64,000 nucleotides of DNA from Adineta vaga (Eukaryota; Animalia; Rotifera). A program made the translations under genes and the position numbers. The notes beneath the pieces were generated by a model, which saw only the letters and a program-made list of their open reading frames with translations, was not told the DNA's origin and did no database searches. The DNA lies in the NCBI GenBank assembly GCA_021613535.1, contig CP075492.1, forward strand, positions 4,836,001 through 4,900,000, in the 5' to 3' direction. Of this stretch, positions 25,836 to 45,416 are shown piece by piece (positions within the stretch are counted from its first letter, which is position 1; each line of letters begins with the position of its first letter).

Positions 25836-26469
25836 CTATAACGTTCGTATACTATCACTACAATGTGCATCTAAAACTGGAACAGCACGTGATGTAAAGT
25901 CCCAAATTTGAAGTAGAAATAATATTTCTATTAGAATGTAGTTGCCACTAGTTAACATCAATCCTGAACGCCATGTAGCATATGATCCGTAGTTGATATG
26001 ACGTGCGAATGAAAACAATCCTTGGGCATAATTACGTCCTTTATTAGCCGGATTGTCTTTGAAACGTTTTTGTTGAGGTTCAGAAATAAATTCTGTGGAT
26101 ATTCCTGCAAGAAACAGACCAACACCGATACATCGACTTGTAATGGAAGGATAAAAATAGAAACTGGACAGAGTTGCTAAAGAATTATACACGGTACTAG
26201 AAGTTGGTGCAATAACAGCAATAGAAAGATCGATTTTCTCTTGCATAATATAACACACATTAATAATTTGTTTGATAGCAGCAACAGAACTCATAAAGAG
26301 GATGAGTTGTTGATGTTAATTTAGAAACAATTTGTTGCCCGTACATAGTTAGTAATGAATATTGAATGTATGGATCGAGTGAACGAAGCAAAGCATAGAT
26401 TGTTCGATTAATTGGTGAGAAACCTTTATTTGAACGATTGAAAACATCACGTGGTATTTTACTACACAT
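25836..26469 (-). pseudogene. Frameshifted DUF1295 / steroid 5-alpha-reductase-like membrane protein, fungal-type
   Basis: SE.QQKRFKDNPANKG..Y..GLFSFARHINYG.Y..WR.G motif; N-terminal LRSLDPYIQY lies in another frame (shift near 26295); the expected C-terminus is missing. Confidence 0.75.
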
Positions 26470-26766
26470 GTTTTTATCGACATCAACAGATGAGAGTTTG
26501 AAATGTTTGTCTAAAAAACTTTGTTGCTTTATTATTCACTGTAAAGCATTGGTTCGGGATCAATCACTAAATACAAGACATTGAGTTTGCTATATCTATT
26601 TTTTGATTATTTGACAACTTATACAAAAACATTATGAAATAATTTCGAATTTATTAATAAAAATATATGTTATTCATAACGACAGTATGACAGAGGTCTT
26701 CAGTTAACATTCTAAATATGAATGCAGATGAAACATCTGATAAAATCGTGAGATGTTTTTCTTTTA

Positions 26767-29700
26767 TTAATGAATAGAATCCTTCAACAAAATCTCATTA
26801 TTGTCCAATACTAATGGTTCGTGAGAAAAGAAAACCGACGTAATGTTCCGCCGTGATTTTCGATTACATTCGTCTTGTACTCCATTCCAAAGAAATTTTA
26901 ATGGAGTGTTCGATTCGGGACGAGTTTCTAACGCTTTTCGTGGTTGAACATTGCTGGAAAAAGGAGAAGGAGTAAATATAGCTGTTATATTAACCTTCAG
27001 CCGTGCTCCCGATGCTTTCATCGATCGTCGTTTGTAGTCCTGACAAAATTTCTCGAATGAATTTTTGTTCTGCTCCATACGTTTGGAAAACTCTGCTTTG
27101 TATTCTTGTAGTTGCTCTTTCGAATAGGAACAGCGAGATGAATATTGTTTCTTATTCTTCTTTTTCTTTTGATGATCTTCTTCAGAATCGTCATCCTTGC
27201 TTTTCTTTTGATAATTTTCTTTGGAATCTTTATCTTTTTTCTTCATGTCAATTCCAGAGATGAAAACAGCATCAGAATGGATTGATTCATCATGTTTCAT
27301 TGTTTCTTCCTTCTTAATTGTTTTTCTCAATTTCGATTCGTTATCAGTAGAAGTTTTTCGACTACTATTTGGTGATAAATCAACCATTGGAGAATATGAT
27401 CCAACATCTGCTGATAGATAAGTTTTTTGTACGACGATATCAAGAATTGGAAATGGTGCATCGTTAATATCACCTGTATATGTAAATGGAGGAATATTCT
27501 TTTTGGTCGGGTTGAGCATTATTCTATTAATCCATTGCTTTAACAATAATACGTCAGTGTCGCAGATTTGGAAAAGAGTGACGACTTTTTGTTCATGATC
27601 GAAATCGGTAGTATGACCTAAAGTATTACGAGATATAGATACGACTTTCTCGATTGTAACAAAGGAAAAAATCAATTGACTATATCAAGGAATTGGACAA
27701 ATCTTTCATTACAAATCTTTTCTTACGTGAGTTATTATTATCAGGCATAGCAACACTCTTTTTGTCGTCGTCTTTTTCCTTATCAAGATATTCTCTATCT
27801 TTAATCATATTATGAACTTGTTTGATAAGAATTTGTCTCTCGTCATCTTTAATTCTTCCACTCTTCGAATTGATCAATTTCTTCACTAGTTCATCATAAA
27901 TCAATTTGCGTTGTTTTGATGTTAGGAGAAAATGCAATTGAACAGAGTCTCCTTTCCACTGGGTTGATTTTAACGACGAAGTAGAACTACATTTGATATT
28001 CTGGAACTAAAAAAAAGGAATGAATGATTAAGTGACAATGATCAGATATTCAAAAGTAGTGACTTACAATTTTCAACAATAATTTATCGAATTGTAAATT
28101 GAAATTATCTTGCGATCCAAAGAATGGTAAACAAATCTGCTGTTCAGTTATTTTCCGCAATAATCTGATTGGTTGACAGTATTCTACTTTGATCGGAATG
28201 ATATTTTTCTGTTTTTCATAAGCATATTTAGCTTCCTCTATACAATTTCGATCGTTGAAATAATTCGTACTCAAACATAGAATGAACAAATCCGATCGAT
28301 CAATTTTTGGAAAGCTGTTTTCGGACGAATCTGATCTCATCCAAACGAAAAACCCTTCATTTGTTAGACATGTTCGTAATTGTTGACAGATAGCAGCATC
28401 ATCTATAGCATAACTCAACACTATTTTGAAACTGTTTGGAATACTTTTCAATGCATTTTGATCTATAGATAACCGCATTTGCACTAAGGCATCAGTGAGT
28501 TCATATTTTTGATAAGCTTGATTCACATTAGCAATAGGCCCAAATAAAACAAGCTGTTGTTGATCATTTAGTTGTGGTAGAACCGATATTTCACGACAAT
28601 ATGAATAGAATCCATTGATTACATCTTGATTCCATTCATTGCACTTGCTGGACAACACTTGTCTACACATTGATCTTTCGAAATAGTGTTTGATTTTCTT
28701 GTCGCATTGCGTAAGGTGTTTCTTGTTTGTTGCAGTAAGAGTAATCGTTGCAACTATAGTAAGAACAAGCTCTCGACCTTATAGAAATGAATTGCTATCT
28801 TACTTGACGTTGGGCAATAGAAATTTCCGTAAGTTCTATCGTTGGTTTGAAGAGTTTGAACAATATCAATAAACTGCTTGTATAACTTTTGTTGATCTGC
28901 TAAGAAAATAAATGATACATTGAGTAAGATAGTTGTTGTTTGTCGAATTTGTTCGATAGTTTCATCAACCATCTCTTCTGCAATGATTTGATCGTGTTGA
29001 CATGAATCTGGCATTGCAATTGCAATGGATAACGTTTGACGATCGGATCGTCTTTCATTTTTGAGCACATATTGAATGATCTTAGATATAAAGAATCGAA
29101 CTGATTCGCTTAGAAAATCTTCATCGGCTAATTTTCCTGGCATTGACCAATTGACAAATAGCATTTTCTTGCAATTCAATCTTCCAGCTGTTGTCTCAGT
29201 AATAAATGGCATTGAATTGTCATGATGAGTTCTCGTATGTTTTGATCGTTGTTCTTCAAGATCACCTGCTCGTTCGATTAAATATTCTTTCAATCCTGAC
29301 GACAATGATGGAATTATGATAATGTCAACCTATAGAATTAGCATTAGAAATAAGAAACTTAGTAGAAAAAAATGGGCTTACTTGTTGCTCAGCGATGTCT
29401 CCAGAAGAAACAGCAATAGATCCATTGGATAACTTGGCTTCGCAAGAAAAAAATGGTAGAGAATTAGGTGAATTCATCATGAGCGGAACAAGTGCAAGAT
29501 CATCTTTTTGTTTGCATAGAATTGGAAAAGGTTTATATTTTCTCGTGAGTTTAAATTTACAATAACAATGATTATCTTTAGCTAGATGTTGTATGTAAGA
29601 AATTGTTTTCTCAGCAATATTATAATAAAATTCAGTTGTATCAATGGTAAGTTTTTTGAAACTTGATAGTAAAGTTTTCAGTTTTAATTGAACATCATTT

Positions 29701-31376
29701 AAGAGATATTGTGGCGCATGAAATTCCTGTTTTTTCAAATCGATTTTGACACCGTCTTTACGCAAGTTATTTTCAATTTTTCCCACTGCTTTCCAACCAA
29801 TCTGGATCAAACAATCGATCTAAATAGATAATACCATGTAAGTCCATCAATGCAATTAAAACTATCCGAATGTGTCATGTATTTTTAAAAGAGAAACTTA
29901 TCGATAAATTGAAACTTACTTGTGTTGATGAAAGTTGAGTGAATTTATATTTGTATAATCGATATTTTTTGAATAAATGTTCAATTTTTGTTAACAATGG
30001 ATTGACCACATTTTTATGTCCAAGTATATCAATAATAGTTTGATCGCTCTTTCTAGTGGATATGTTTTCAGTAATCGATATAAATGAACTATTTCGTTGT
30101 TGAGACTGGATGATTTCATCGAATTCCTTTCGATATTGATTTACAGCATAGATTTTCTCCTTCTGAATAATTTGACATGTATCTAGATCCATATATTCAA
30201 CTAAAAGAAATTCATCCGTCACAGAAATGAATAATTTCTCCTGCACAATCTGATGTTCAATAATATTATCAATTTCAATAGCTTGATGAGAATTATTGAA
30301 TTTATCATCATTGAAATGGACGATTTCTAACGTTGGTGCAGATGTCTCATACTAAAAGATAAGTTCTTACTAGAACATAATGTCACAATTATACCGTTGC
30401 TTTTGGCAGTGTATTTGATCGACATATTATGAACATATGACTATCACGATCGATGATTTTTTGTATAATGCCAACAGCTGATGTATTGGAAAACCATTGT
30501 TTTACTGAAATACAAAGTATAGATGACAAATAATGCCTGTTTGCTCTTTCTACCTTTTCGTTGTTTGTATTTGCGAATTTGTACTTTTTTAAATAACTTT
30601 TCGATAAAATTTATAATCGTCTGATATTGTTTTTCTGTACCAGTCAGTTTGAGAGTATACTTTAGTGAAGACCACTCATCATCAGATGTTGTCTGATCAA
30701 TCTCAATCCGAATAGGACCTCTTTCTCTATCGACATAGTCAATAAAATATGAACGAAACTTTTGATTTTGAAGAAATTGAACAAGATTATCGTCATCGAT
30801 AGTATATTTGTACTGACGTTTGACAGTTACTAAATCATCTGTCTTAGTTTTCGTCGAATTATTTGTTTCGTGATGTCTTTTCTAGAAGAGATTAACAATT
30901 TGAGTGTATGAATATCGATCAAATGATTACAAAACAGTAATACTTACATGTAGGTTACTAGGATTCTCAGATCTTGATCGTCGTTTGTGATGATTACTAA
31001 CGATTTCTGATGAAATTCTAGCACGGTCATCCGCGTATTGTGACGATATACTCGAATTTACGTCAACTTCTTCAACAAGGACTCTTCTCAAATCGATGAG
31101 TTTTTCTCGAAATCGACTTTGAGTTCCAATCGTAGGTTTTCGAATCGTCCCATCATCCTGTAACTCAGAGAGTACCTTTGCAATATCTTCATCGTTCAAT
31201 GCTACCAGAGCATTACCGTCGATGTTTAATTCTATAAAGTTCAGTTATAATAAAGATTAAAAGACAAAGTTAACATAATTAAAAAACATAGATTTACTTT
31301 TAAACCTTTTAATATATCTCTTAAATCCATTCGCTTTCAGCCAATGACTAACTTGGTCTACATTCCACTTTGTCAT
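26767..31376 (-). CDS. Multi-exon SAM - KH-like - Macro - TIR - unknown C-terminal domain protein (gene C)
   Basis: SAM: MTKWNVDQVSHWLKANGFKRYI...NIDGNALVALNDEDI; Macro: SIAVSSGDIAEQQVDIIII...TTAGRLNCKKMLFVNW...SIAIAMP; TIR: IVLSY...SDLFILCLSTNYFNDRNCIEEAKYA...IIPIKV; the exon joins I checked are in frame. KH-like call is inference. Confidence 0.85.
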
Positions 31377-32689
31377 GATTGATCACGTAAAATAAACCTT
31401 TGGAGCAATCTGAAATCGACGAAATCTCACGACTATCTTAGAGTTTTTGCGAACGAGGTTAAGTAAATGCAACTGCACATATAGCTATGTGTCAATTCCA
31501 CATCTGCATTCTCACCCAACTACAACTTCATGATTTATTTACATTTATGACGCCAATACTTACAACCAACAATTATTCTACAAACATATCTCCGAAATGT
31601 TTTTTCCAACTTACCCATGTTTGATGTTTTTCTGTTCTAACGTACCTGGCATTGTTGATTGACGATTATTATTCCTTTCTTTTTTTTGGTGGATCAAAAA
31701 TAAAAAGTTTGTATGTTTGACTGCAACCAACACATTCTCACTACTGCGTAATACATTATTAGTGACTTATTTTATCCGGATAAATCAGCTATGTTCTTGT
31801 GTGAATTTCAGTTCTCGTCAATCTCCATAGATCTTATCGGCAACTCACATTTTCTCCTTCTATTTTTTAATGTTTGTACAGACATGAAAACCCTCAGAAT
31901 CAACTCTAGATTGAAAACTTTATTGATAAAGCAACCGGTATGTTATTGTGTTATTGTGTTATTGCTTATTTATTAGGATTCACTATAAAAATAATTGATG
32001 TGCTCATGGAGTAACTTAACTATATAAATCTGGAAAACAATCATTTGATAAGAATATTTTATTCTTCAATTTCTTTTTAGAACATATAAATGAACTATTG
32101 ATCAACAGAAATATAACACTTACTTGATCAGTTAAAGGTGACTATACTTTCTTTTCTATTATTTATTTCGCGAGCAAATGCTTATGAGAGGCAAAAATTT
32201 CTTCTTTTCTCTTTTAAAACATTTTTTTCACGACTTTCTGTTGCAAGATTTATTCAGAGAAAAGGAAATGTAAATAGTTATAAAATGAAGAAAAATACAT
32301 ATTCGTATGTAAATATTTTTATGTTTCAGAGTAACAGCGACGAGTATTACGCACAATAAATCAGTGGTTTTATTAGCATGACTCTTTCACAATATAATCC
32401 ATAGATTTTTGTAAGTCTAGACGTTATAAAAGAAATGGAATAACATACAGAACGACTGACTCTTCTGTCAAATTCTTTATACATTCTTCCTTACTTTTTA
32501 AGGATCTGAATACTATCGTTTCTAAGGGCCTTGTCGAGTCCATTTCGAGGAAACTTCAGACTAGTGAAATTAGTCAGAAATATCTGATCGAAGAGCAATG
32601 TGATTATTGACATAGAATAAATTTTTCATCTGTGTTTGCCTTCACATAGTTATAGTCTGATCAATGTTGTTCATAATCCCAGATATCAT

Positions 32690-32728: not shown

Positions 32729-35700
32729 ATGGCAAATTGGACTTTGAAACAAATCATTGAATGGTTGCAAATAAATGGTTTTGAAAAGCATATACAAACG
32801 TTTATAGGTAAGCAATTGATTCATTGAATGTGTGTGCTGCAAGTATATGCATGATCTTTTATGCCATAGATGAAGATATTGATGGAGCAGCACTCATGGG
32901 TTTACGCGACGATGATATTATAAAACTACTTGCTGTGGTGGATCAAAAAGGAGTACGAACAAATCCGACGATGAGAACACTACGAAAGTTTTTGGCCAAA
33001 CTAGAAGAATTGAAGATATTGGGGAACAAAGAACAAAAGAGAGAAAGAAGACGCAGCGGGTAAGTGAATTTATTCTGTCCAAAAGTTTTTCAGACTGTGA
33101 TATTCTAGTGCACTTCATTCATCCATGATGACTGTTAAGCCTATTGGTCATACAGTTAATGATTCAAAATCACATTCTCAAATATTTATTGTTCAACCGA
33201 GAAGCTCGCAAATTAAATTTTTCCAAAGTGAATTGATCTGTAACTATTTACAGGAGTATTTATCGACAAATTTTGATGTGACATGCAACATACCTATGAC
33301 AATTCTGTCCATATCAAATACTGACTTGTTAGTACGATTGTCCGGTCATAAACAAGAGGTGCAAGCTGCTCATCAAAATCTTCAATCATTATTTGCTACA
33401 TTACATACCACAATTTTGAATGAAAACAATGCGAGTCCAAAAGGTTAGTAGTTCATTGTATATAGAAGAAAAACAATAAATACATTTCGTTTAATAATAT
33501 CTCTTTAGTAATCAAATGGTCAAAGAACATCCATTGTGACTTAGCTCTTCTTGTACTTCAGAAAATCTTTATTGATAAGAAGTTATGCACTGTTTGGGAG
33601 AAAACAAGTGTGTTGTCTGGATACTATATTGTTCATTATCTAACTGGTAATCATGATCCCAGTGCCTCGGAAGAATTTATCAACCATGTATTAAATCATG
33701 ATATATCCTTCGTCAAAGATATCACTGTATCGAATGCTCACAAAAGATACCATAGCGAATTGGATGAATTTATCCAAAACAAGAAGAATGCTTCACAACA
33801 AAATCAATCCATGGCTGTAATTTCCTTACAATATCCGTCTCAAAAGGACTTCAAAATTAGTCTTTTTGGTTTGAAAGATATTGTTCAAGTTACAAAAAAA
33901 CAATTAAAATTACTAATCAATAAACATCAGATGAAAACGACAAAACTCAATCTGGATTCAAAACAGGTAAGAACTGCATATTCTCTAGATGTCATCTCGA
34001 TAAATAATATTGTTTTAATTTTAGCGTGAATATCTATTGGACAATTGTACCTCTCATTTGAGAAATATTGAATTGAATTATGAAGATGATAATGTTAAAA
34101 TTCAAATTCGTGAAAGTTTATTTACTTCACCTCAATATCTCGTAAAAATAATTGAACAGCTGATTCTATCGATGATTTTCCAAACAGTGAATTTAACTTT
34201 CAAATCGATCGAAAATGCATTTCTATTGACAGACAGTGATCGTTTACAATTAGAAACTCTTGCTAAAAACTGCAATTGTGAAATAAACCACATCGAAGTA
34301 AAAACAGAAGAAGAATCTATCATAATACCTAAAGGAAACATTCCTGCAACACCTGAACATCTCGCAAAAGACTCAAATCAAGTTTCTGCTACATTATTTG
34401 TGCCAAAATAGTATCTATATCGAACAACACACTAGAAATTCGAAAGACTGATCAATTAAAGGTTTGCTTTTTCTACTAAACCATTACATTCCACGAGGGA
34501 TTTCATTTGATTGATTTTAGACTGATATCATAGTACTATCAACAGAAGATGATTGCATTCGAGAGAAAATTGAATCTAAGAATCAAGTTGGATATTATCA
34601 AACCAATACTGGTAAAAATTTTCTTTATATACCATGGTCACCAACACAATTCAAACAATATGACGATCGACCAAAATCTATTCTAAAAGAATCAATAAAA
34701 CAGTTCATATCTCACTCATTAACACAATTAATTCAACATAGTGATGCGAATGTAAAAACAGTGGCATATTCAACAACGAAATGGGAGAATTATCCACATC
34801 GACAACAATTTATCCAAATATTTATTCGCCAAATGAAATTACAATTGGAATCTGAACTGTTTGCGAATCGTGGCTGGAGAATTATACTTCCTTTCCATCA
34901 AAAACAATGTTTCTTATTTAAAATGTTTTCAGACATCCTATCAAAATCAAAAACTCAAAATAATAGTGATGAACAATTCTCATGTCCAATATCGAGTAAG
35001 TATAGAGATAAAGGCATCGTTTGTTTTATGTCTATTCGTTGCTTTCTAGTAAACACACTTGCACTAAAAACCTCGAGCGATAATAATATTGTCAAATGCC
35101 AAAAAGTCATCAGCAATTATATCGAGACAAATGTTTTCATAACAGTGAAAATTGATAAACCATTTGATTTACATATTTGGAATCAATTTATGATTAACGA
35201 TTATTACAATTACTGTTTACAAGAAATGATCTTACCCAATTTCTTTCAAACAAACTCACAACCGCAGTATCTGGAACTAGCTGGTCCAGTAAAAAAAGTT
35301 CATATAGCAAAAGAAAAGTATGAACTAATGTCTCAAATTGCTCATCTGAAAAGAATACCTGCAAATCTCGTACCTATCAAAGATCATCAATCGTCGAAAG
35401 TTACGCTGAAAACATCCAAAGAAATATCAAATCAATACAATATTCTCATAAGTTATTGCTCTTTAGATGGAACATTGCCTCTGATTCTTGCTGATCATTT
35501 TACTGATGAAGATTATATTGTATTAACTGAAGCTTCCGATCAAACATCTTCGTCTCATATTGCAAGCATAAATAGAGCAGATGTTATTGTCATTTGCTTT
35601 AGTTCAAATTATTTCATGAATGCGAATTGTAGAACTTCACTACGAACAGCAATCGAATCCTCGCAGAAAACAATCATACCTGTTGTTCTTCTAGCAAATT

Positions 35701-37248
35701 CATCAGATCAACCGATCAATTGGCTTGAATGGATTGATGTACAAGAATTATATTATGAAATATTTCACGAAGAAATTAAATTTAAACTTAACACAAATTT
35801 TGATCTTAATTATGAAAGATTATTAATTGAATTGGTAAGCTGAGCAGTTTCTTAAGTATTCATTATTATAGGATAAGAATTGAAAGGCAGCATTATTTTC
35901 ATTTCCACAGATTCGCACTCATTCTCTTTACTAATTAGAGCTTTCTATTTATAGCTTCAATATACTAAACCAGGTGTATTTGGTCATAAATATCCAAAAT
36001 CTAGTAATACTTCCGTCGAAGAATCTACGCAAAATGAAGATGCTCATCATCACGATAAAACTATCGAATTAACAGCAGTAGAAATGCAAACGAAAAGACG
36101 AATCTATGAAGAGCGTATTCAGAAAATTGTTCAAAGCCAAAAAATTTCAGAAAAGGAAATGAAACAACTGATTCGTAGTTTAGAAGTTGTATTGAAATCA
36201 TCGTCAAGTCAAGAAAGTTCAGATACATCGGAAGAAGAAAATTCAATAATATCCAGTGAAATTTCTGAACAGTCTGAAAATAATATGAACGAAAGAAATA
36301 AACAAGGTCAGTAATTAAAATTCCATTATGAGAGAAAAATATTATAGATATCATGAAGACAGATGACAAGAAGATGATAGATTTTTATGAGTTAGATACT
36401 TTAGAAAAAATGGTAGAAGTATCCTGAGTGCTTTATATGAACTTCTCAGATGTATTTATCGTAGTGTTTTATTGTATTTGTTTTCAGAAGAATTAAACAT
36501 TTGTTCTGAGTACTTGCATGCTTTCTTCTTATTGATACAACGTTGGATGGAAGAAGCATCAAATAAAACAATGATTCGGGGTAATTTACCACCATTTACT
36601 TTGTCTGGAGATTATAATGATGCTATATTTCCACTCCCATTATCGAATAAACTTCCCTGGTGGGACGTAGAAGATAGTATTCAGAATATTTATCGCTCAA
36701 AATTAAAAGAACTTGAGCTATTTCCAGAAGTGAAAATGATTGGAGGATGGTTTAATTGTGATGAAGCACATTTTTACTTTGAAAAATTAATTGATCCTGA
36801 TATGCAATTTCGAGAAGAAAGGAAAGATATAGATGAAACAACATCTGATGAAGGAAAAAACAACATAATATCTAGAACTTATATGAAATTTAATACGTCC
36901 GTACAGAGACATATCTCAGTTTGGGATCGTGATCAAGATGTCGAACTCTTAAAAGAATACAGAAGACGTTTAAATAACTCGAAAACGGATTTACCTGACG
37001 ATCTTCTAGAAAGATGGGATCATTATTGGTCTACAAACGCACAGCTTATACGAGATATGGTATGGGGAAAAGTTGAAGCTCAATCAAGATCTAGAGAAGA
37101 ATGTCGAAAACTTGAAATGCTGGATGATCCAAACAATGAACTGTGGAAAAAGAAAAAAAGAAACCGTGGATGTCGAAAATTTGTTAAACAGAAAATACGA
37201 AATACGATTGAATGGCAAAAATTCTTAGACGTACAAAAAGATGACTAA
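32729..37248 (+). CDS. Divergent paralog SAM - KH-like - degenerate Macro - TIR(E to S) - unknown C-terminal domain (gene D), apparent frameshift at ~34408
   Basis: SAM: MANWTLKQIIEWLQINGFEKHIQTF...DIDGAALMGLRDDDI; TIR: ILISYC...INRADVIVICFSSNYFMNANCRTSL...IIPVVL; shares NLPPFT.SGD.NDA.FP with gene C; junctions at 36.3-36.5 kb not resolved. Confidence 0.8.
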
Positions 37249-37386
37249 AAACAAGTTAATCAAGTTGACCATTGTATCTCGAATATTCTTTTTTCAATAA
37301 ATTGCCAATTCTACTTCTATAATTGTATAACTTTGATTCCACATTCTTATAAGACATTTCTATTTTTAGATAAATCAATTCTTTAC

Positions 37387-39776
37387 ATGACTGCTTTACT
37401 TCAAACATCTAAAAATGGTTCAATTACAGGTTTACTCGAACTATTCGATGATGTTGTTTCATTTCTCGATAATAATACTTACGAATCAACGCTTGGCTTA
37501 CACAAACTAACCGCTATTTGTAATAAATTCATTGGCATTCATGCCTTGGATCTATTTGATAATCCACTAATTATGAAACATAGACTTTTCTTCTTACTCA
37601 GTCGAACATTCAGCATGTTGTTATCAAAAATGATATTGGTTCCATTGACATCGGTCGATCAGGAATGTTTAGATGCAATTAGCTCATTTGTTGCTAATCT
37701 GTGTTTGTACAAGAATAAAACCATTGATTGTTTCTATACAGGTTTTAACGAAGAACTTAATCCAGAATCATATGAACAAATCTTTTTTACTAAACATTTC
37801 ATAGACAAATTTATTCGAATGGTAGAACATGATATTTCCGTCCATGATTATCCATCACCATATGATATTAAATACAAAATAACTGATCGTTTACTTCGTC
37901 TCTGGATGAAATTACAACATATGAATTACAAATGTATTCTTGATGCAGTAGTTAATTGTTTGATGTCGAGTAGTTATCTGAATGCATATGAAAGTATTGA
38001 TCTTCATAATCCAATATTAACCCCAAAACAATCATTATTTCTGTATCAATGTCCGAAATTTATTCGTCTGATGTCTTATGAACGGCAGGAAGCTATATCA
38101 CATATATTATGTGAAAAGATTTTAAGCGATACCAATGTCATACTTCGAAAGTACTTACCTGTTATTTTAGGACGTGAATCAAAACTAGTGCGAGAGACTA
38201 ATAAGAAGCCAAAAGAAAAAGTATTTACATGCATACCAGCTGGATTGTTTGACGATGAAAGAGGAGCAAAAATGCCTGCTATTGCTTGGAATATAGAATT
38301 ATTAAATTATTTTGCTTTGACATCAACAATAGCCATACGAAGTTGTTTTTATACAAGTATGTAATGATGTCAGTTAATCCTGATAAGAATAAAACAGATT
38401 TATATATTTTTTCGCTTAGATCATGATCGCAATGAGACAATGGTTGATCAAATGCTTGCTCTAATAAGTGAAGAATCTTTAATTAAAAGTGTTAAAGTAC
38501 ATGTTCTATCGTTCCATGCCGATGTTGCTCTTATGTCATATTCACTTGTACTGTTATATAATTTGGTATTTGACGAAACAATACATCGACATATAAAAGA
38601 CAAAAAACCATTTGATGCTCTCAAAGAACTTTATGTAGCGAAAGATAAAGTAATCCAATTTACATCACGCACATTAGCTGCAATTTTAAGAAAAGACAAA
38701 ATCGATAAAATTGATAATCCAGCGAAAATTGCAAAATCCTATTTATATTTGATCGAGAATACTCTTGAAGATCCATCATTGATATTTCATGGAATTAAAT
38801 TGGATGGAGTATTAACCAATTTGGAAAGTAAGTTATTATACACTTATATTTCATTATAGTAAGTATCATACGATAGTTGCGATATTTGAATGAGAAAACT
38901 TCAGTGGAGTGTATAAATAAACAGACCATTGTGACTAGAAAGAGTAACTTTGTTCCTTTTATTTTAGCTGTTGTTCAAAATGATGACGTGAAAGAAGAAA
39001 TTGTCAACGAAGATGGTATCAATTTGATAGGAGATATTGCATATCGTGAAGATCTAGATGAGAAAACCATACGTGATCCTACTATTCGAATTATTGAAGG
39101 TCTCTCGTTCGCAAAGGAAGGATATAAAAAAATTCTTGAAAATGAACGCTTATCAGCTTATTTGGATACATTGTTGCACGATAGAGATGCTGAGAAGAGA
39201 TCAATAGCAAAATATATCAATTGGAATGTTAAAGATCAGAATACTTTTATAAAAGACAAAACTTGCGAAACAGAATCTGGGCGAGCAGAAAACATACGAC
39301 CAAAAAACCTATTTGACATTAACAAAGCCATTTATCAATACGTTCCAGGTGATTACAAGTTTCGTTTGGATGATGAAAAAAGGTGGAAAAAAATCAATAT
39401 TCGAATTAGTTGTAGTCAACAAGATCAAAAGATATGCAATGATATTTACAATAAATTGATGGAATCCGACTTATACAACGTATCGTTCGATACATCCAAC
39501 TCACAACGTCCAGATCCTGAAGTACTGGCCAATGAAGTTGAACGTTCCTCTGTCGTTATTATATGTGCGTCAAATACATATCAAAATTCGTATCCATGCC
39601 GAATAGAAGCTGTTTATGCTAAGAAGAGAAATCGAAAAATTATTGCGGTTAAGTTCAATGACTATATTCCTTCAAAATGGTTAACTCGTATTATAGAAGA
39701 AGAACCTATTGTGTTTACACCCTCAAAATTTAATGAGGCATGGGCTCAATTACATGATACAATCAATAAAGAATAA
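37387..39776 (+). CDS. ARM-repeat-like solenoid + C-terminal TIR protein (gene E)
   Basis: Exons 37387-38356, 38420-38827, 38968-39776 in frame; helical ARM-like segments (LVLLYNLVF, VKEEIVNEDGINLI); TIR: IRISCSQQDQKIC...VERSSVVIICASNTYQNSYPCRIEAVYA...IIAVKF. Confidence 0.85.
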
Positions 39777-40029
39777 GAAAAATACTGAAACAGAACGCTA
39801 TAGTAGACGAAAAGATACCTTTTTTAAACTCTAACCTGCATTTGATAGTGACATTAACAATAAATATGTGATGCCGAAGCAATTCTTTTAATACACTATA
39901 ATTAGTTTTATCCTTACATATATCAATGTATCTTTTGTAGATAAAAATCTTTTTCAACCAACGGCGAATTCGTACAAAAGACAAAACAGTATTATTTGAT
40001 TAGAATATTTGTATCCTTCGAAGTATATC

Positions 40030-42090
40030 ATGGCTGAAAAAGAGAACACATTGAACAAAATGTCAACTCAAAATTCATCATCAGCGAAAATAGTTAAATG
40101 TAAACAAGAAATGACACAACAAAAAATTCTTGAAAATTGTATTGTCCTCTGGCTAGATGAAAATCTTGATTTTTCTACTGATCATAGTCAAAAATGGATT
40201 TCTCAACTTCGAAATATTGTCAATACCATCGAAACGTTTAATGATATCGATATATGTCTTGAATATTTAACTCAGCTCAAAGATGAGAAAATCTTCTTCA
40301 TTGTTTCCGCTTCTTTATTAAACCAAATTGCTGTTCTCGAAGACAAATTCATTCAACTCACTTCAATTTATGTGTTGTGTGACAATGCAGTAGCAACCAA
40401 TGATAATGTCAAAGCATTTAAAAAAGGAAAAGGTATCTTCACAACTATGAATCATCTTTGTAGCGAATTACAAAACGATGTTCGTCAAGTGGAGAAAAAT
40501 TTGACTTGCAGTACTACAATTTCGTCATCACCCAACTTAGATCCTAATGAACTTCCACCAACATTTATGTACTGTCATTTATTAAAAGAAAAATTCTTTA
40601 AACTTGAAGATGATCCCAATGCGAAAGACGAATATATCGAATATTGCAAACCACAGTATGAAAAGGATAAACATCAAAAATATTTAGCAGAACGTTTTCT
40701 GACGACGTATGATCGCGCATCTAAAACAGAATCACCTATTTGGTGGTATACAATGGAATGTTTCTTATATAAGATGCTCAATCATGCATTATGGACACTC
40801 GATATTGAGATTCTTATGAAAATGAGCTTCTATATTCGAGATCTTCACGAACAGATCAGTGAACGATATTCAAATCCAAAAGAAAAACATCCATCAGTTG
40901 TATATCGAGGACAAGAATTGTCGGAAGCAGATTTTAGGATGTTAAAGAAAGGCGATTTATTTGCATTCAATAATTTTCTTTCGACAACTATCGTTGAAGA
41001 AATAGCACGCAAATTTCTAAAGGGACCAAGCGGCGGACCTGATAGAGTTGGTATTCTATGGAAAATAGAAATTGATTCATCTGCTTCTTCCGTACCTTTT
41101 ACTGCAATCGAAGATATTACTGCTATGAAAAAAGAATTCGAAGTTCTTTTCTCCATTGGAGCGGTTTTTCGTATTGGTGACCTAGAGGAACGTGAAGATA
41201 ATGAAACTAATTTCTGGCAAGTTAAATTAACTTTAACAGATGGTCGTGATCCATCATTAAATCGTATAACTGATTGTATTCGAAGATCACTTGGTCCTGG
41301 AACTGGTTGGCGTCCATTGGCTCAACTAATGATCAAAATGAATCATTTTAGCAAAGCAAAAGAAATTTATGAGAAATTAAAGCCTGATGATAAGACTGGT
41401 GACAAAGTAGAATTAACTTTCTTTCATAATCAACTTGGTTATATTGAAAAACAAATGGGTCATTTAACTGAAGCTCTTGATCATTATCAAAAGGCTATTG
41501 ATTCTAGTAAAGAATGCATGTCTCCGAAAGATGCTCGCCTTTCCAGTGTATATTCGAATCTTGGTGCGATTCTGAAGAAGCTAAAGGATTTTGATGGAGC
41601 ATTAAAATATTTTGAACTTGTTCTGGAAATTGATCGTACTACAGCGGATCCCAATCGACTAGAAATTGCAATTGATTATAATAACATTGGCTCAATACTG
41701 GATGATCAAGGCAAATATTCTGAAGCTCTCAAGAATTATGAAAAAGCATTAGAGATTAAACTAGTTCATCTGCCCGCTCATCATCCATCTTTAGCCAATA
41801 ATTACAGTAACATTGGTGTAGTTCATCGTAAAATGGGTGATTGTTCGACAGCTTTGTCATACTATAAAAAGACTCTTACTATTCAAAACAAAAGTTTGCA
41901 ACCTAATCATTCTGCATTGATTGTTACACATAGTAACATGGCAACGGCATTGGAAAATCTTGGTAGGATTAACGAAGCGATTGAACATGCAAAAATGGCT
42001 GCTAACATTGCAAAGAATGCATTTGGAGAGAAACATTCTGAAACAAATAGACGGGCACAAATTTTACATGAACTTGAAAAAAGACGATAA
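40030..42090 (+). CDS. R-S-E ADP-ribosyltransferase + TPR protein (gene F), intronless
   Basis: VVYRGQ, NNFLSTT, EFEVLF catalytic motifs; PIWWYT..CFLYKMLN; about 42-aa kinesin-light-chain-type TPRs (YNNIG...QGKYSEALKNYEKALEI). Confidence 0.92.
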   Translation: MAEKENTLNKMSTQNSSSAKIVKCKQEMTQQKILENCIVLWLDENLDFSTDHSQKWISQLRNIVNTIETFNDIDICLEYLTQLKDEKIFFIVSASLLNQIAVLEDKFIQLTSIYVLCDNAVATNDNVKAFKKGKGIFTTMNHLCSELQNDVRQVEKNLTCSTTISSSPNLDPNELPPTFMYCHLLKEKFFKLEDDPNAKDEYIEYCKPQYEKDKHQKYLAERFLTTYDRASKTESPIWWYTMECFLYKMLNHALWTLDIEILMKMSFYIRDLHEQISERYSNPKEKHPSVVYRGQELSEADFRMLKKGDLFAFNNFLSTTIVEEIARKFLKGPSGGPDRVGILWKIEIDSSASSVPFTAIEDITAMKKEFEVLFSIGAVFRIGDLEEREDNETNFWQVKLTLTDGRDPSLNRITDCIRRSLGPGTGWRPLAQLMIKMNHFSKAKEIYEKLKPDDKTGDKVELTFFHNQLGYIEKQMGHLTEALDHYQKAIDSSKECMSPKDARLSSVYSNLGAILKKLKDFDGALKYFELVLEIDRTTADPNRLEIAIDYNNIGSILDDQGKYSEALKNYEKALEIKLVHLPAHHPSLANNYSNIGVVHRKMGDCSTALSYYKKTLTIQNKSLQPNHSALIVTHSNMATALENLGRINEAIEHAKMAANIAKNAFGEKHSETNRRAQILHELEKRR

Positions 42091-42290: not shown

Positions 42291-43591
42291 TTAATTGCAT
42301 GGACATGTTTCTTTCATTTGTACACCGTATTCATACGAACGAAGACCGCTCGTCGGGGAATAAGTAAATGCTACATATGACCATGTACGAGTTGAAATAG
42401 AATATTCGAAATTTATATCAATATATGTAGATTCTGAAGAAGTACGATGTCGCAAAATAAATGTACCAAGCTCAGTCAAACTAAGTAAAAGAGCATATGA
42501 TGAATCTTCCCATCAAGAATAGTGCTATTCGTAAATATATAAGCATATATCCAGAATGAGAAAGAATAGGATTGATTTGATGTATCGAAAAGTGCAGAAG
42601 TGGTTGTTTGAAAATACGATAAATTTGTATTAGAAGATATTGATTCATTGAATTGACCATCATTGGATATATTCACATTGATTGCTGTACAATTGATCTG
42701 ATTTGGTCCTACATGAAGAATTATCATGAAAGATAAAAGAGAATATAAATTGCACAATATCCTTACCTGAATCATAAAGAAACTTATCCGAATCGAATGT
42801 ATAGTGAAAAACTAGAGTTGCATCTTCAAGAATTTCCACTGGATCTTTCACTCGTGTGACTAATGATAATTCATCAATTAATCCATTGAAATATGTATTT
42901 AATTTTGGTGATCCTCCAATCACCAATGACGCAGTACTGGATCCAACATATGAACCTGAATTAGTGCTAAAACCACTTAATATACCATTGATATAAATGA
43001 GTTGTTCTTGTTTATCTGTATCATGTACAAATGCAACATGTGTCCAAGTATTCATTGGTTTACCATAGCTTAGAATGATCTTTAAACATTAAAATGGTAT
43101 ATTGTTAGTAGTATCAGAGCATTGTGCAAATATGAGAAAACCATTGAAAACCATACCAATACTAGGATTGATCCATGCTTCAATAGTAGAACTCGGTTGA
43201 CGAGTGAAAGTGTCGGTGTTGGAATTTCTATGTATTGTGAGCTTCGAGCAGCTACTGAGAGTGCACTACCAGAATTAGTTATACCAACAGACGATGAAAG
43301 ACTAGCTCTATGATGAGAAATCCCATTGTAAATATTATAAGAATCATTGTAATTGTTATCAAACGATCAGAATATTTTTGTAATCAATTCGCTTGGATAT
43401 TCTGATGGAATAGATGGGATTATTGTATTCGATGAAAAGTCACGACTAAGTTCTGTATTATTCAAATATATGATTATCGGTTGAATATTTTGAATGATAC
43501 AAATGCGAAGAGAACCACCATTTAGCAACCAATATTGAATTACACAAAATACAATAAGAAAAGCTGCAACTCCAACAAACGCTAATTTCAT
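42291..43591 (-). pseudogene. LamG/concanavalin-A-like tandem-domain pseudogene
   Basis: N-terminal hydrophobic segment; IF*SFDNNYND (Trp to TGA); frameshift before TIEAWINP; WTHVAFV...IYING...FNGLIDEL; second domain WSYVAFTYS truncated. Confidence 0.8.
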
Positions 43592-43698: not shown

Positions 43699-45416
43699 TT
43701 ATTTTAGAATCAACCTACATATATTTGTATAAAACTCGAGAACCAATGGGATTTTTCTTTGTTCAATCAAGATTACGAATACTATAGAGCTTATAAAATA
43801 AACACTAAAAACTGGATACCACTTTATTCCAAGTGATTCTATTGTTCTTTCGAAATAAAATCGATTATTCTTATTATACATATGTTGAATATTTATTAAT
43901 CGTTTTTGATGTATATTATAATAAACATCCATCCAATTTGGTACATTTCTATCAATATAATTAATGTATGAATGTTTTGTTGAATCAGTATACAAAGTCA
44001 CATATACGTCATCTAACCAATTCATCTGTTGTTTTTCTTCTTCTTGATCATGCCAATAAACCATAAACTGTATACCAAATTTATAATTTCGATGTGGAAA
44101 TGCTGTCCGATCAACTGGAATTGTATTCATATATCCATTCCAAGGACTAAATCCCAAAACAAGTTGACCACTACCTGATGCTAATCGATCAATAAATTTA
44201 TCAAGACTATGATCACTTATTGGTTGATTATAGAATAAATGTTTTGCTTTGAAGTAATATGTTGGATATGATAAGTTTTCAAGTAATAATTGTCGATGAT
44301 CACCATTGAGTTGACCAACATCAGAACTCTCATAGATAAAAGTAAGCCAATCTCGTTCACGTGCAAGTGTTTTGTTTGGAGTAGGCAATGTCTGTAACAA
44401 GAGCGATATCGTTCTATTAAATTCATCTGATTCCATTCCAAAATGAGTGATCGAAATTAGTATATGACTAGGATTCACACCCATTTGCCAAAATATCTAG
44501 TTACTTAGATTGAATAAATTTTCATTGAATAAAAGTGATTGATATTGTTGGATTACTAATTTTGTGACATTTGCGTGCCAAGTGAATGAATAACTTTTGA
44601 CAAGTAAAGGAGATTTAATTAAACAAAATTTGAATTCTGTTACAATAACAAATAAACCTCCACCAGCACCACGCAATGTCCAAAATAATTCTGGTTCATG
44701 AGTTTCATTGATTGTCAATAGTTCACCTAAAGTCAAATAGTTGACTGTTGATGTATCAATGAAAACAAAACTGTACTAACCTTGAGCATTGACAACTTTC
44801 ATTTCTAAAATATTATCGGCTAGTAATCCATGTAATCGAACAAGATAACCATAAACACCACCGAGTGCAATACCAGATAGTCCAACCCATCCACAAGATC
44901 CAGCATTAATTGTATAGTTACCTTTTTCATATGTTCTATAATAGATTGGACCCCGTCTTGCTGATTGATGTTGATATGATTGATTGCTTTCATATTAATG
45001 ATAATATTGTTATGCATTGAACGTAAACCATAAGCTTCATAACTGTGCCCACCACCCAATGCATTTACAATATAATTTAATTTATTTGCACATCTAACAA
45101 CAGTTTGAATGTTGCCAGTATCTTCTACATAAACAACAAGAGCAGGTGAATGAGAAATTCGACCACCATGAATGCTTGATAGACTAATAACACTGAATTC
45201 ATTGTATCAATATTTTGAATTGTTTTGATGTGTTAATGTATCACATGGATAAACGGTTCGTACTGATGATGGCAATGATAGTGATAGGCATTCAAGTAGA
45301 TCATCATTGTTTGTTCGTGCGAGTTTTTGATTAGTATCATCACTTTTGGTCGTGCAAGTCACTTGAAAAACATACACGGATAGAATGAAGTATGGAATCC
45401 AGTTAAATTTAATCAT
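43699..45416 (-). pseudogene. Secreted FAD-linked oxidase (berberine-bridge-enzyme-like) pseudogene
   Basis: GGGHSYE FAD-His motif, ELFWTLRGAGGG.F.IVT, TAFPHR, SYINYID..Y..NNRF BBE tail; frameshift/deletion near 44955 and in-frame stop at 44497. Confidence 0.85.

Follow-up and report, generated by a model that had tools for sequence, protein, structure and literature searches.

Introduction

PARP14-type ADP-ribosyltransferases and TIR-domain NADases are the two main arms of innate immunity that consume nicotinamide adenine dinucleotide (NAD+). Canonical macrodomains hold the diphosphate and distal ribose with a glycine-rich loop 1 and a G-x-G loop 2, and between helices 1 and 2 of RNA-binding KH domains stands a GxxG loop that serves the binding. 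In PARP9 and the antiviral enzyme PARP14, macroPARPs of PARP clade 3, a KH domain is split by insertion of the macrodomain. For their activity, TIR NADases depend on a conserved glutamate and on association between TIR domains; in the plant and bacterial enzymes the catalytic glutamate stands in an S-x-x-Y...W-C-x-x-E motif, plant TIRs are also reported to have 2',3'-cyclic nucleoside monophosphate (2',3'-cNMP) synthetase activity on nucleic acid, the ARM domain of SARM1 is autoinhibitory, and MyD88 is a non-enzymatic adaptor. Here we describe a gene that joins a PARP14-like domain array to a TIR domain in the bdelloid rotifer Adineta vaga. Within a window of 64,000 nucleotides (contig CP075492.1, positions 4,836,001 to 4,900,000; G000:C3:4836001-4900000), which is the whole stretch of DNA that we analysed, one expressed gene encodes a cytosolic multidomain protein of 1337 residues in which a SAM domain and a linker precede four KH-like modules, after which come a macrodomain, one more KH-like module and a TIR domain with a C-terminal tail.

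Among the closest described systems, PARP9 macro 2 and PARP14 macro 2 and 3 are ADP-ribose readers and not hydrolases (PMC13224862), the KH domains of PARP14 bind RNA and also mediate contact with DTX3L (PMC10450202, PMC13224862), and PARP9 and DTX3L share a bidirectional promoter (PMC13224862). Oysters possess DED-TRADD-N-KH-RRM-macro-ART proteins that arose in a lineage-specific expansion of PARP14-like genes (PMC8195603), and this macro-ART expansion is the nearest published parallel to the rotifer gene: in both lineages a KH and macro scaffold has been recombined with immune adaptor domains, but the oyster proteins keep ART and vary the N-terminal adaptor, whereas in the rotifer the output domain has changed. 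Our search of the literature, which covered papers other than subscription-only ones, found no macro-TIR or KH-macro-TIR protein and no such TIR genes of Adineta; nor did any paper describe the architecture, and an initial annotation made from the DNA sequence had likewise known of no characterised SAM-macro-TIR protein of animals.

The rotifer protein resembles PARP14 and PARP9 in its array of type I KH-like modules, in a macrodomain of the PARP9 macro 2 and PARP14 macro 2-3 type, and in the KH-like module that follows it. It differs from them in having one macrodomain, with the glycine loops lost, where they have two or three, in an N-terminal SAM domain that replaces the RRMs, and in a TIR domain and long tail in place of WWE and ART. 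With SARM1 and TIR-1 it shares a SAM domain upstream of a TIR_2-type TIR domain with a glutamate on helix alpha-C (Z-scores to SARM1 of 11.6 for SAM and 15.9 for TIR), but its SAM domain is single rather than tandem, the ARM-tandem SAM-TIR arrangement is not found since no ARM match was obtained, and about 750 residues of KH-like modules and macrodomain separate SAM from TIR. The rotifer protein is not an ortholog of SARM1/TIR-1.

Results

One spliced transcript encodes the whole protein

In this window of about 31% GC, minus-strand stop-to-stop frames form a chain of exon-like pieces across the gene, whose ten exons (Table 1) are separated by introns of 43-109 nt. Contigs of runs X1 and X2, aligned to 26300-31900, skip all nine introns; since the introns have been removed, these contigs are RNA-derived and the gene is transcribed and spliced. 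Their overlaps (26679-30320; 30006-30881 and beyond; 30554-31214; 31027-31231 plus 113 nt of exon 1) compose one tiling path through all ten exons, from 26679 to past the 31231/31298 junction, and their depth falls off near 31410-31535. Seven of the nine joints are clean GT..AG on the minus strand, two of these after a 2-nt shift, and the remaining two, with one or three extra contig letters, resolve as single-base strain differences beside the GT..AG introns 30352-30394 and 29820-29919. The joined exons yield 1337 codons without an internal stop, and the start and stop codons are exactly those that the initial annotation had proposed.

The public annotation, UJR07881.1 (I4U23_012163; here P0001), is a protein of 813 residues that is 100% identical to residues 525-1337 of the joined frame, and it therefore omits the first 524 residues. 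The split lies at 29477, between the annotated part (26767-29476) and the omitted SAM and KH-like part (29477-31376), which the spliced RNA contigs place on the same transcript. This late annotated start is what would be expected if the gene were an artefact of annotation, whether as a pseudogene in decay or as two or more genes, an N-terminal one for SAM-KH and another for macro-TIR. Against such a reading, the spliced contigs overlap and between them cross each intron from the first exon to the tenth, the 1337-residue frame is free of stops, and full-length orthologs and paralogs of 1260-1351 residues occur in six other bdelloid species. The contigs tile one transcript, not the two that the initial annotation had allowed for; the contig tiling and unbroken frame rule out two genes or a pseudogene, and we regard an artefact of any kind as very improbable.

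We used the joined model to check the frame, to derive coordinates and to make local comparisons with fetched proteins. As search inputs we used single exons, P0001 for residues 525-1337 and, standing in for the N-terminus, the A. ricciae ortholog (P0002; 1312 residues, 54% identical to the window protein). AlphaFold2 (AF2) models covered residues 1-575 of P0002 and 1-480 of P0001, with mean predicted local distance difference test (pLDDT) values of 74.9 and 84.8, respectively, and the boundary between them falls at residue 525.

Homologs turned up in bdelloids alone (A. vaga, A. ricciae, A. steineri, five Rotaria species and Didymodactylos carnosus), apart from a few metagenome fragments, and the SAM-KH-macro-TIR family is multigene. 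Single-nucleotide polymorphisms (SNPs) from other A. vaga samples are synonymous and non-synonymous at about 1:1 (9:10 and 10:10, from a partial list), and in the partial list from RNA contigs 8 of the 10 non-synonymous SNPs fall in the C-terminal tail.

The macrodomain is of the PARP9/14/15 type

Pfam searches of single exons or single family members did not detect the macrodomain, and Pfam KH_PARP14_8, KH_PARP14_2 and KH_PARP14_5 gave sub-threshold matches in 3 of 18 family members, so that a family profile and predicted folds were needed. Against the PDB, the family macro profile matched only PARP9 macro 2, PARP14 macro 3 and PARP15 (E 3e-6 to 7.5e-5). The AF2 model of the macrodomain, with pLDDT mostly 85-95, was matched by Foldseek at probability 1.0, and its VIA Z-scores were 18.7 to PARP9 macro 2 and 17.9 to PARP14 macro 2. 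The PDB profile matches, structure and BLASTP agree on a PARP9/14/15-type macrodomain, as macroPARPs possess, and bear out the GDI-bearing macrodomain of the initial annotation, present as GDIA at residues 551-554 (Asp552 codon, 29399-29397).

The binding pocket is altered. The aspartate that contacts adenine N6 in GDIT-type motifs is kept as Asp552, is conserved in the paralog type of this gene and is lost in the partner type described below. In loop 1, IIIPSLSSGLKE stands against NSTSNSFNLKAGVSKA of PARP14 macro 3; the loop is some five residues short of its counterparts in that domain and in PARP9 macro 2, and it holds a single glycine and no Gly-Gly. Loop 2 is also shorter and reads AMPDSCQ where PARP14 macro 3 has IGTGNA, PDSCQ standing opposite the GTGN of PARP14 and PARP9. 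An A. vaga macroPARP (locus L014, below) likewise has a short loop 1 but retains IGCG in loop 2, so that the loss of loop 2 is specific to the TIR family. A hydrolase function for the macrodomain was ruled out, because the catalytic loops are absent.

The scaffold is colinear with a macroPARP of the same genome

Searched against the A. vaga genome (100.8 Mb in six contigs), the family macro profile found 33 places, and at least 16 of these have a PARP catalytic match no more than about 2 kb away. In one such gene, the KH-macro-WWE-PARP gene of locus L014 (C2:2.2205-2.228 Mb), the profiles of KH-like module 1, module 3, module 4, the macrodomain and the post-macro module match in the same order as in the window protein (Table 1), followed by WWE and a PARP catalytic domain; the module-2 profile had no match in L014. 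Pairwise BLASTP against L014 gave E 3e-4 for module 4 and E 2e-18 with 31% identity for the macrodomain. At locus L015 the post-macro profile matches directly downstream of the macro match (E 3.2e-17), and a PARP domain follows; the post-macro module occupies the place of the last KH before WWE in macroPARPs. The L014 layout agrees with published accounts of PARP9 and PARP14, whose macrodomains are surrounded by KH arrays (PMC10450202).

The C-terminal ART of macroPARPs, usually preceded by WWE, is missing here: PARP and WWE Pfam models that match L014 and L015 found nothing in the exon pieces or in family members. The colinear matches to L014 thus place the TIR domain where a macroPARP has WWE-ART, and the point of exchange lies directly after the post-macro module, with WWE-ART on one side of the comparison and TIR plus tail on the other. 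The PARP14-like scaffold of the initial annotation was well founded, as an A. vaga macroPARP is colinear and homologous with this protein over the macrodomain and every KH-like module but module 2, and the SAM, macro and TIR domains that the annotation had named were each found by profile searches.

The genome contains 82 PARP catalytic matches, a large macroPARP expansion in A. vaga. Macro-PARP genes lie at G000:C3:4927384-4929081, about 27 kb past the window end, and at 15 or more other places, some with tandem macrodomains, and the macro profile of the TIR family matches their macrodomains. Another locus, L016 (G000:C1:5607000-5614500), matches modules 1, 2 and 4 and the macrodomain at 5608374-5609930 and has no recognisable TIR, WWE or PARP in its downstream frames; it may be a truncated copy or may show the scaffold with an output of a third kind.

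KH-like modules flank the macrodomain

The type I KH order of elements is found in three of the four modules before the macrodomain, and module 3 differs by three extra strands. Module 1 aligned with hnRNP K KH3 at Z 7.1 (root-mean-square deviation, rmsd, 2.8 over 74 of 76 residues), with PCBP2 KH3 at Z 6.8 and with N4BP1 KH at Z 6.7. The tandem FBP KH3-KH4 structure gave Z 6.8 over model residues 152-312, an alignment that is weak since its rmsd is 18.5. With Foldseek, the best KH match of the 575-residue N-terminal model was N4BP1 at probability 0.51; its top rows, to ribosomal uL6, were rejected as spurious (rmsd >12).

In the ESM Atlas the KH region lies nearest to a PARP-Macro-WWE cluster of rotifers and second nearest to one that bears KH_PARP14_1 and KH_PARP14_2, while the remaining neighbours are KH proteins of the vigilin, FUBP and BICC1 types; all of the ten nearest clusters with a Pfam family or name are KH-repeat or Macro-PARP. 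Fold, Atlas neighbours and colinear profiles together identify a type I KH array flanking the macrodomain, as in macroPARPs. The alpha/beta repeats with LxLxG patterns that had been noticed initially are present as LKLTG, IDILG and LVLFG in modules 1, 3 and post-macro, with a KH-like fold at moderate scores, and these are the same three modules that hhalign links weakly (E 0.003 for modules 1 and 3, E 0.0034 for module 3 and post-macro, and E 0.0016-0.0034 for the linked pairs overall). Because these signals are weak and hhalign detected no repeat signal for the other KH-like modules, internal repeat homology rests mainly on fold.

A SAM domain before the scaffold and a TIR domain after it

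The SAM domain of the initial annotation was confirmed by Pfam SAM_1 on exon 1 (E 7e-5), with paralogs matching SAM_1 or SAM_2 at E 1e-7 to 6e-8, and by a five-helix bundle in the P0002 model (residues 1-80, pLDDT 86-93) with VIA Z-scores of 11.8 to Scm SAM, 11.6 to SARM1 SAM and 11.2 to TIR-1; Foldseek matched the SAM domains of Shank and SAMD1 at probability 1.0. Its nearest neighbours by structure alignment, which include the SAM domains of SARM1 and TIR-1, assemble into oligomers or heterodimers. The linker that follows is poorly conserved and variable in length in the family alignment, and residues 82-149 of the P0002 model form a low-confidence stretch.

The TIR domain matches Pfam TIR_2 at E 1.8e-14. 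Its model has VIA Z-scores of 16.9 to Hydra TRR-2, 15.7 to C. elegans TIR-1 and 15.4 to the RPS4/RRS1 TIR heterodimer, and it superposes on the SARM1 TIR with Z 15.9 and an rmsd of 1.9 A over 119 residues; phmmer with the window TIR alone against the PDB returned only chance SKP1 matches. The CxxE motif noticed initially is present as C903-I-E-E906 within S-x-N-Y...C-x-x-E, and Glu906 sits on model helix 377-388 (alpha-C), after strand C. The domain thus combines a TIR fold with a conserved glutamate on helix alpha-C, as TIR NADases do, and motif and helix position make Glu906 a candidate for their catalytic glutamate; in the profile alignment its position is opposite a glutamine in MyD88. The glutamate is kept in 34 of the 67 TIR domains of the family, and the A. 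ricciae, A. vaga and Rotaria proteins most closely related to this one are among those that have it. In the DNA contigs of run X7, from another A. vaga sample, position 28238 is G, not C, which gives Glu905Gln beside an unaltered Glu906.

The tail of about 370 residues had no Pfam match and no ESM Atlas match. It contains two motifs that are conserved across bdelloids in both paralog types and that match no known domain.

Discussion

Colinear homology with a macroPARP shows this gene to be a sensor scaffold of macroPARP type whose NAD+-using ART output has given way to TIR and which has gained a SAM domain at its N-terminus. We favour the explanation that this scaffold with its TIR output acts as an innate-immune sensor-effector, to which, as a whole, we assign a probability of about 0.58. 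A ligand or partner, whether a nucleic acid, a modified protein or the head-to-head paralog encoded next to this gene, would bind the KH-like and macro scaffold and bring about SAM-driven self-association, as in SARM1 and TIR-1. Self-association would draw the TIR domains together and form active sites around Glu906, and the assembled TIRs would cleave NAD+, resulting in NAD+ depletion or a nucleotide signal, with the neighbouring paralog, which lacks the glutamate, as a possible regulatory partner.

Several observations weigh against this explanation. The N-terminal fold was predicted on the 54% identical A. ricciae ortholog, not on the window sequence, and its KH fold scores are moderate (Z about 7); as none of the five KH-like modules has a GxxG loop, nucleic-acid binding by them is uncertain. 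Both glycine-rich phosphate-binding loops are missing from the macrodomain. The predicted NADase activity is read from one conserved glutamate and a fold, and the equivalence of Glu906 with SARM1 E642 from motif and helix position rather than from a structural alignment. The glutamate is lost in 33 of the 67 family TIRs, some of them with an intact GDIA macrodomain, so that catalysis is not required across the family, and among PDB sequences the family TIR profile comes nearest to MyD88 (E 2e-4). The immune role itself is read from domain types and neighbours only.

Some of these points would suit a TIR domain that serves as a MyD88-like, non-enzymatic adaptor, in which Glu906 is incidental and the TIR builds a signalling assembly by drawing in other TIR proteins, encoded either by the paired paralog or by the ARM-like TIR gene that lies two genes along. 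MyD88 is the best PDB match of the profile, half of the family TIRs do without the glutamate, and two further TIR genes lie within 8 kb; yet the nearest relatives of this gene in A. vaga, A. ricciae and Rotaria still have the residue, and the domain is of TIR_2 type and superposes closely on the SARM1 TIR. We therefore consider NADase activity plausible, with the odds slightly in its favour, and a purely adaptor role rather unlikely. If the domain is an enzyme, its substrate could also be nucleic acid rather than NAD+, held as RNA or single-stranded DNA by the KH-like array. The array does stand upstream of the TIR domain, and PARP14 offers a precedent in RNA-binding KH fragments and a catalytic fragment that ADP-ribosylates nucleic-acid ends (PMC10450202), but with modules that lack GxxG and are not markedly basic we see little prospect for this alternative.

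How a sensor-effector of the favoured kind might be controlled is a separate matter. The initial annotation had proposed an NADase gated by ADP-ribose or RNA and possibly self-amplifying through the ADP-ribose that TIR makes. Gating by RNA would have to do without a GxxG loop in any KH-like module. In line with gating by ADP-ribose on the macrodomain, the adenine-contacting Asp552 is conserved in this paralog type, and the closest macrodomains are ADP-ribose readers (PMC13224862); against it, loop 1 is short and holds one glycine where PARP14 macro 3 has a glycine-rich turn, and loop 2 has PDSCQ in place of GTGN, a loss specific to the TIR family. From the residues that are kept and lost, ADP-ribose gating appears doubtful, and gating with self-amplification is unsupported so far and improbable as an account of the gene; the NADase half of the proposal holds as plausible given Glu906 and the fold.

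ART and TIR outputs have been exchanged on the same sensor scaffold within one genome, and this suggests that the front end of KH-like modules and macrodomain serves as a portable unit for sensing to which different outputs can be fitted. The macroPARP and TIR genes of A. vaga also lend themselves to a paired comparison of what such a front end senses, in human PARP14 as well.

Table 1. Coordinates of the gene, its protein modules, the compared macroPARP and the neighbouring genes. Positions are those of the window unless a locus or contig is named.
Feature	Position	Strand	Residues (aa)	Details
Whole coding region	26767..31376	-	1-1337	ATG 31376, TAA 26769-26767; 10 exons
Exons 1-5	31376-31298, 31231-30948, 30881-30554, 30504-30395, 30351-29920	-		
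Exons 6-10	29819-29382, 29329-28804, 28753-28068, 28006-27727, 27617-26767	-		
SAM domain	31053..31370	-	3-86	split by intron 1 (31232-31297)
Low-complexity linker	30831..31052	-	87-138	probably disordered; pLDDT 30-39 in ortholog model
KH-like module 1	30591..30818	-	143-218	beta-alpha-alpha-beta-beta-alpha; LKLTG (aa 198)
KH-like module 2	30253..30584	-	221-300	beta-alpha-alpha-beta-beta-alpha; spans introns 3 and 4
Module 3	29962..30249	-	302-397	three extra strands, then beta-alpha-beta-beta-alpha; IDILG (aa 374)
KH-like module 4	29655..29955	-	400-466	beta-alpha-alpha-beta-beta-alpha; spans intron 5
Pre-macro helix		-	475-493	
Macrodomain	28856..29450	-	535-715	split by intron 6 (29330-29381)
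Post-macro KH-like module	28467..28724	-	743-828	alpha-beta-alpha-beta-beta-alpha in AF2 model; LVLFG (aa 800)
TIR domain	27983..28427	-	842-969	spans intron 8 (28007-28067)
Candidate catalytic Glu906	28235-28233	-	906	GAA; in motif STNYFNDRNCIEE; C903-I-E-E906
C-terminal tail	26770..27982	-	970-1337	helical stretch, K/S/D-rich low complexity, two motifs
Tail motif 1	27448-27560	-	1075-1112	W..K..N...K.N-I-P-P-F-T-x-T-G-D-I-N-D-A-x-F-P
Tail motif 1 core	27498-27448	-		NIPPFTYTGDINDAPFP
Tail motif 2	~27036-27089	-	1231-1248	F-x-K-R-M-x-x-N-x-x-E-F-E-x-x-C
L014 KH-like module 1	L014, 2932-3276			family profile E 3e-6
L014 module 3	L014, 3288-3839			family profile E 7.5e-5
L014 KH-like module 4	L014, 3797-4216			family profile E 4.7e-10; directly upstream of macrodomain
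L014 macrodomain	L014, 4210-4755			genome profile search E 2e-25; Pfam Macro 4e-7
L014 post-macro module	L014, 4787-5272			family profile E 2.7e-16
L014 WWE	L014, same frame as post-macro module			Pfam E 2.5e-5
L014 PARP catalytic domain	L014, 5248-5965			Pfam E 4.8e-14
Spacer between divergent start codons	31377..32728	.		1.35 kb; candidate shared promoter
Head-to-head paralog (P0045, UJR07882.1)	32729-37245	+	1242 in all	tblastn; SAM, KH-like modules, TIR_2
ARM-like/HTH/TIR_2 gene	37333-39776	+		three adjacent open frames, probably one gene
ART-TPR gene	40009-42090	+	693-aa open frame	TPR_12 E 6e-41, many TPR matches
Four A. vaga head-to-head pairs	C3 4.257/4.261, C3 4.865/4.870 (this window), C3 14.265/14.269, C1 11.448/11.451 Mb			

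A head-to-head pair within a conserved gene cluster

A second family member, an ARM-like TIR gene and an ART-TPR gene lie beside the gene, and the four make up a conserved cluster. The second member, P0045, lies head to head with it, has a macrodomain without GDI and without the helix-1 segment, and carries serine at the position of Glu906; in most members of its paralog type the glutamate is replaced by other residues. The same head-to-head pair, followed by a TIR gene and then a TPR gene, is found in A. ricciae. Pairing with a KH-bearing relative across a 1.35-kb spacer recalls the bidirectional promoter shared by PARP9 and DTX3L, and a head-to-head pair in which one TIR domain has the catalytic glutamate and the other has not recalls plant RPS4/RRS1, although the rotifer proteins are without NB-ARC and LRR and that likeness is one of gene layout only.

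From this arrangement we put forward, tentatively and as a joint proposal that we think less probable than not by a wide measure, that the head-to-head paralogs might share a promoter and form a KH-mediated heterocomplex in the manner of PARP9 and DTX3L, coupling recognition of nucleic acid or ADP-ribosyl groups to a TIR NADase, and that they might constitute one NAD+-centred immune module together with the ARM-like TIR and ART-TPR genes. Such a heterocomplex, if real, would use a PARP14 chassis for an animal counterpart of the paired TIR receptors of plants, and the active/inactive pairs would show the paired-receptor logic known from plant TIR-NLRs to reach into animals, provided that both proteins interact.

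In the next gene of the cluster we found a weak ARM-like match, HTH_60 (E 2e-5) and TIR_2 (E 7e-10), and a 752-residue TIR_2 gene (L001:2307-4726) takes the equivalent place in A. ricciae. The ART-TPR gene, which likewise has a TPR gene at the equivalent place in A. ricciae, shows weak ADP-ribosyltransferase matches before its TPRs (ADPrib_exo_Tox E 2.4e-4, ART E 6e-3). Farther along the window, minus-strand frames at 42660-43055 and 43699-44484 match Laminin_G_3 (E 2e-14) and, weakly, a berberine-bridge-like domain (E 3.6e-3), and they appear unrelated to the TIR cluster.

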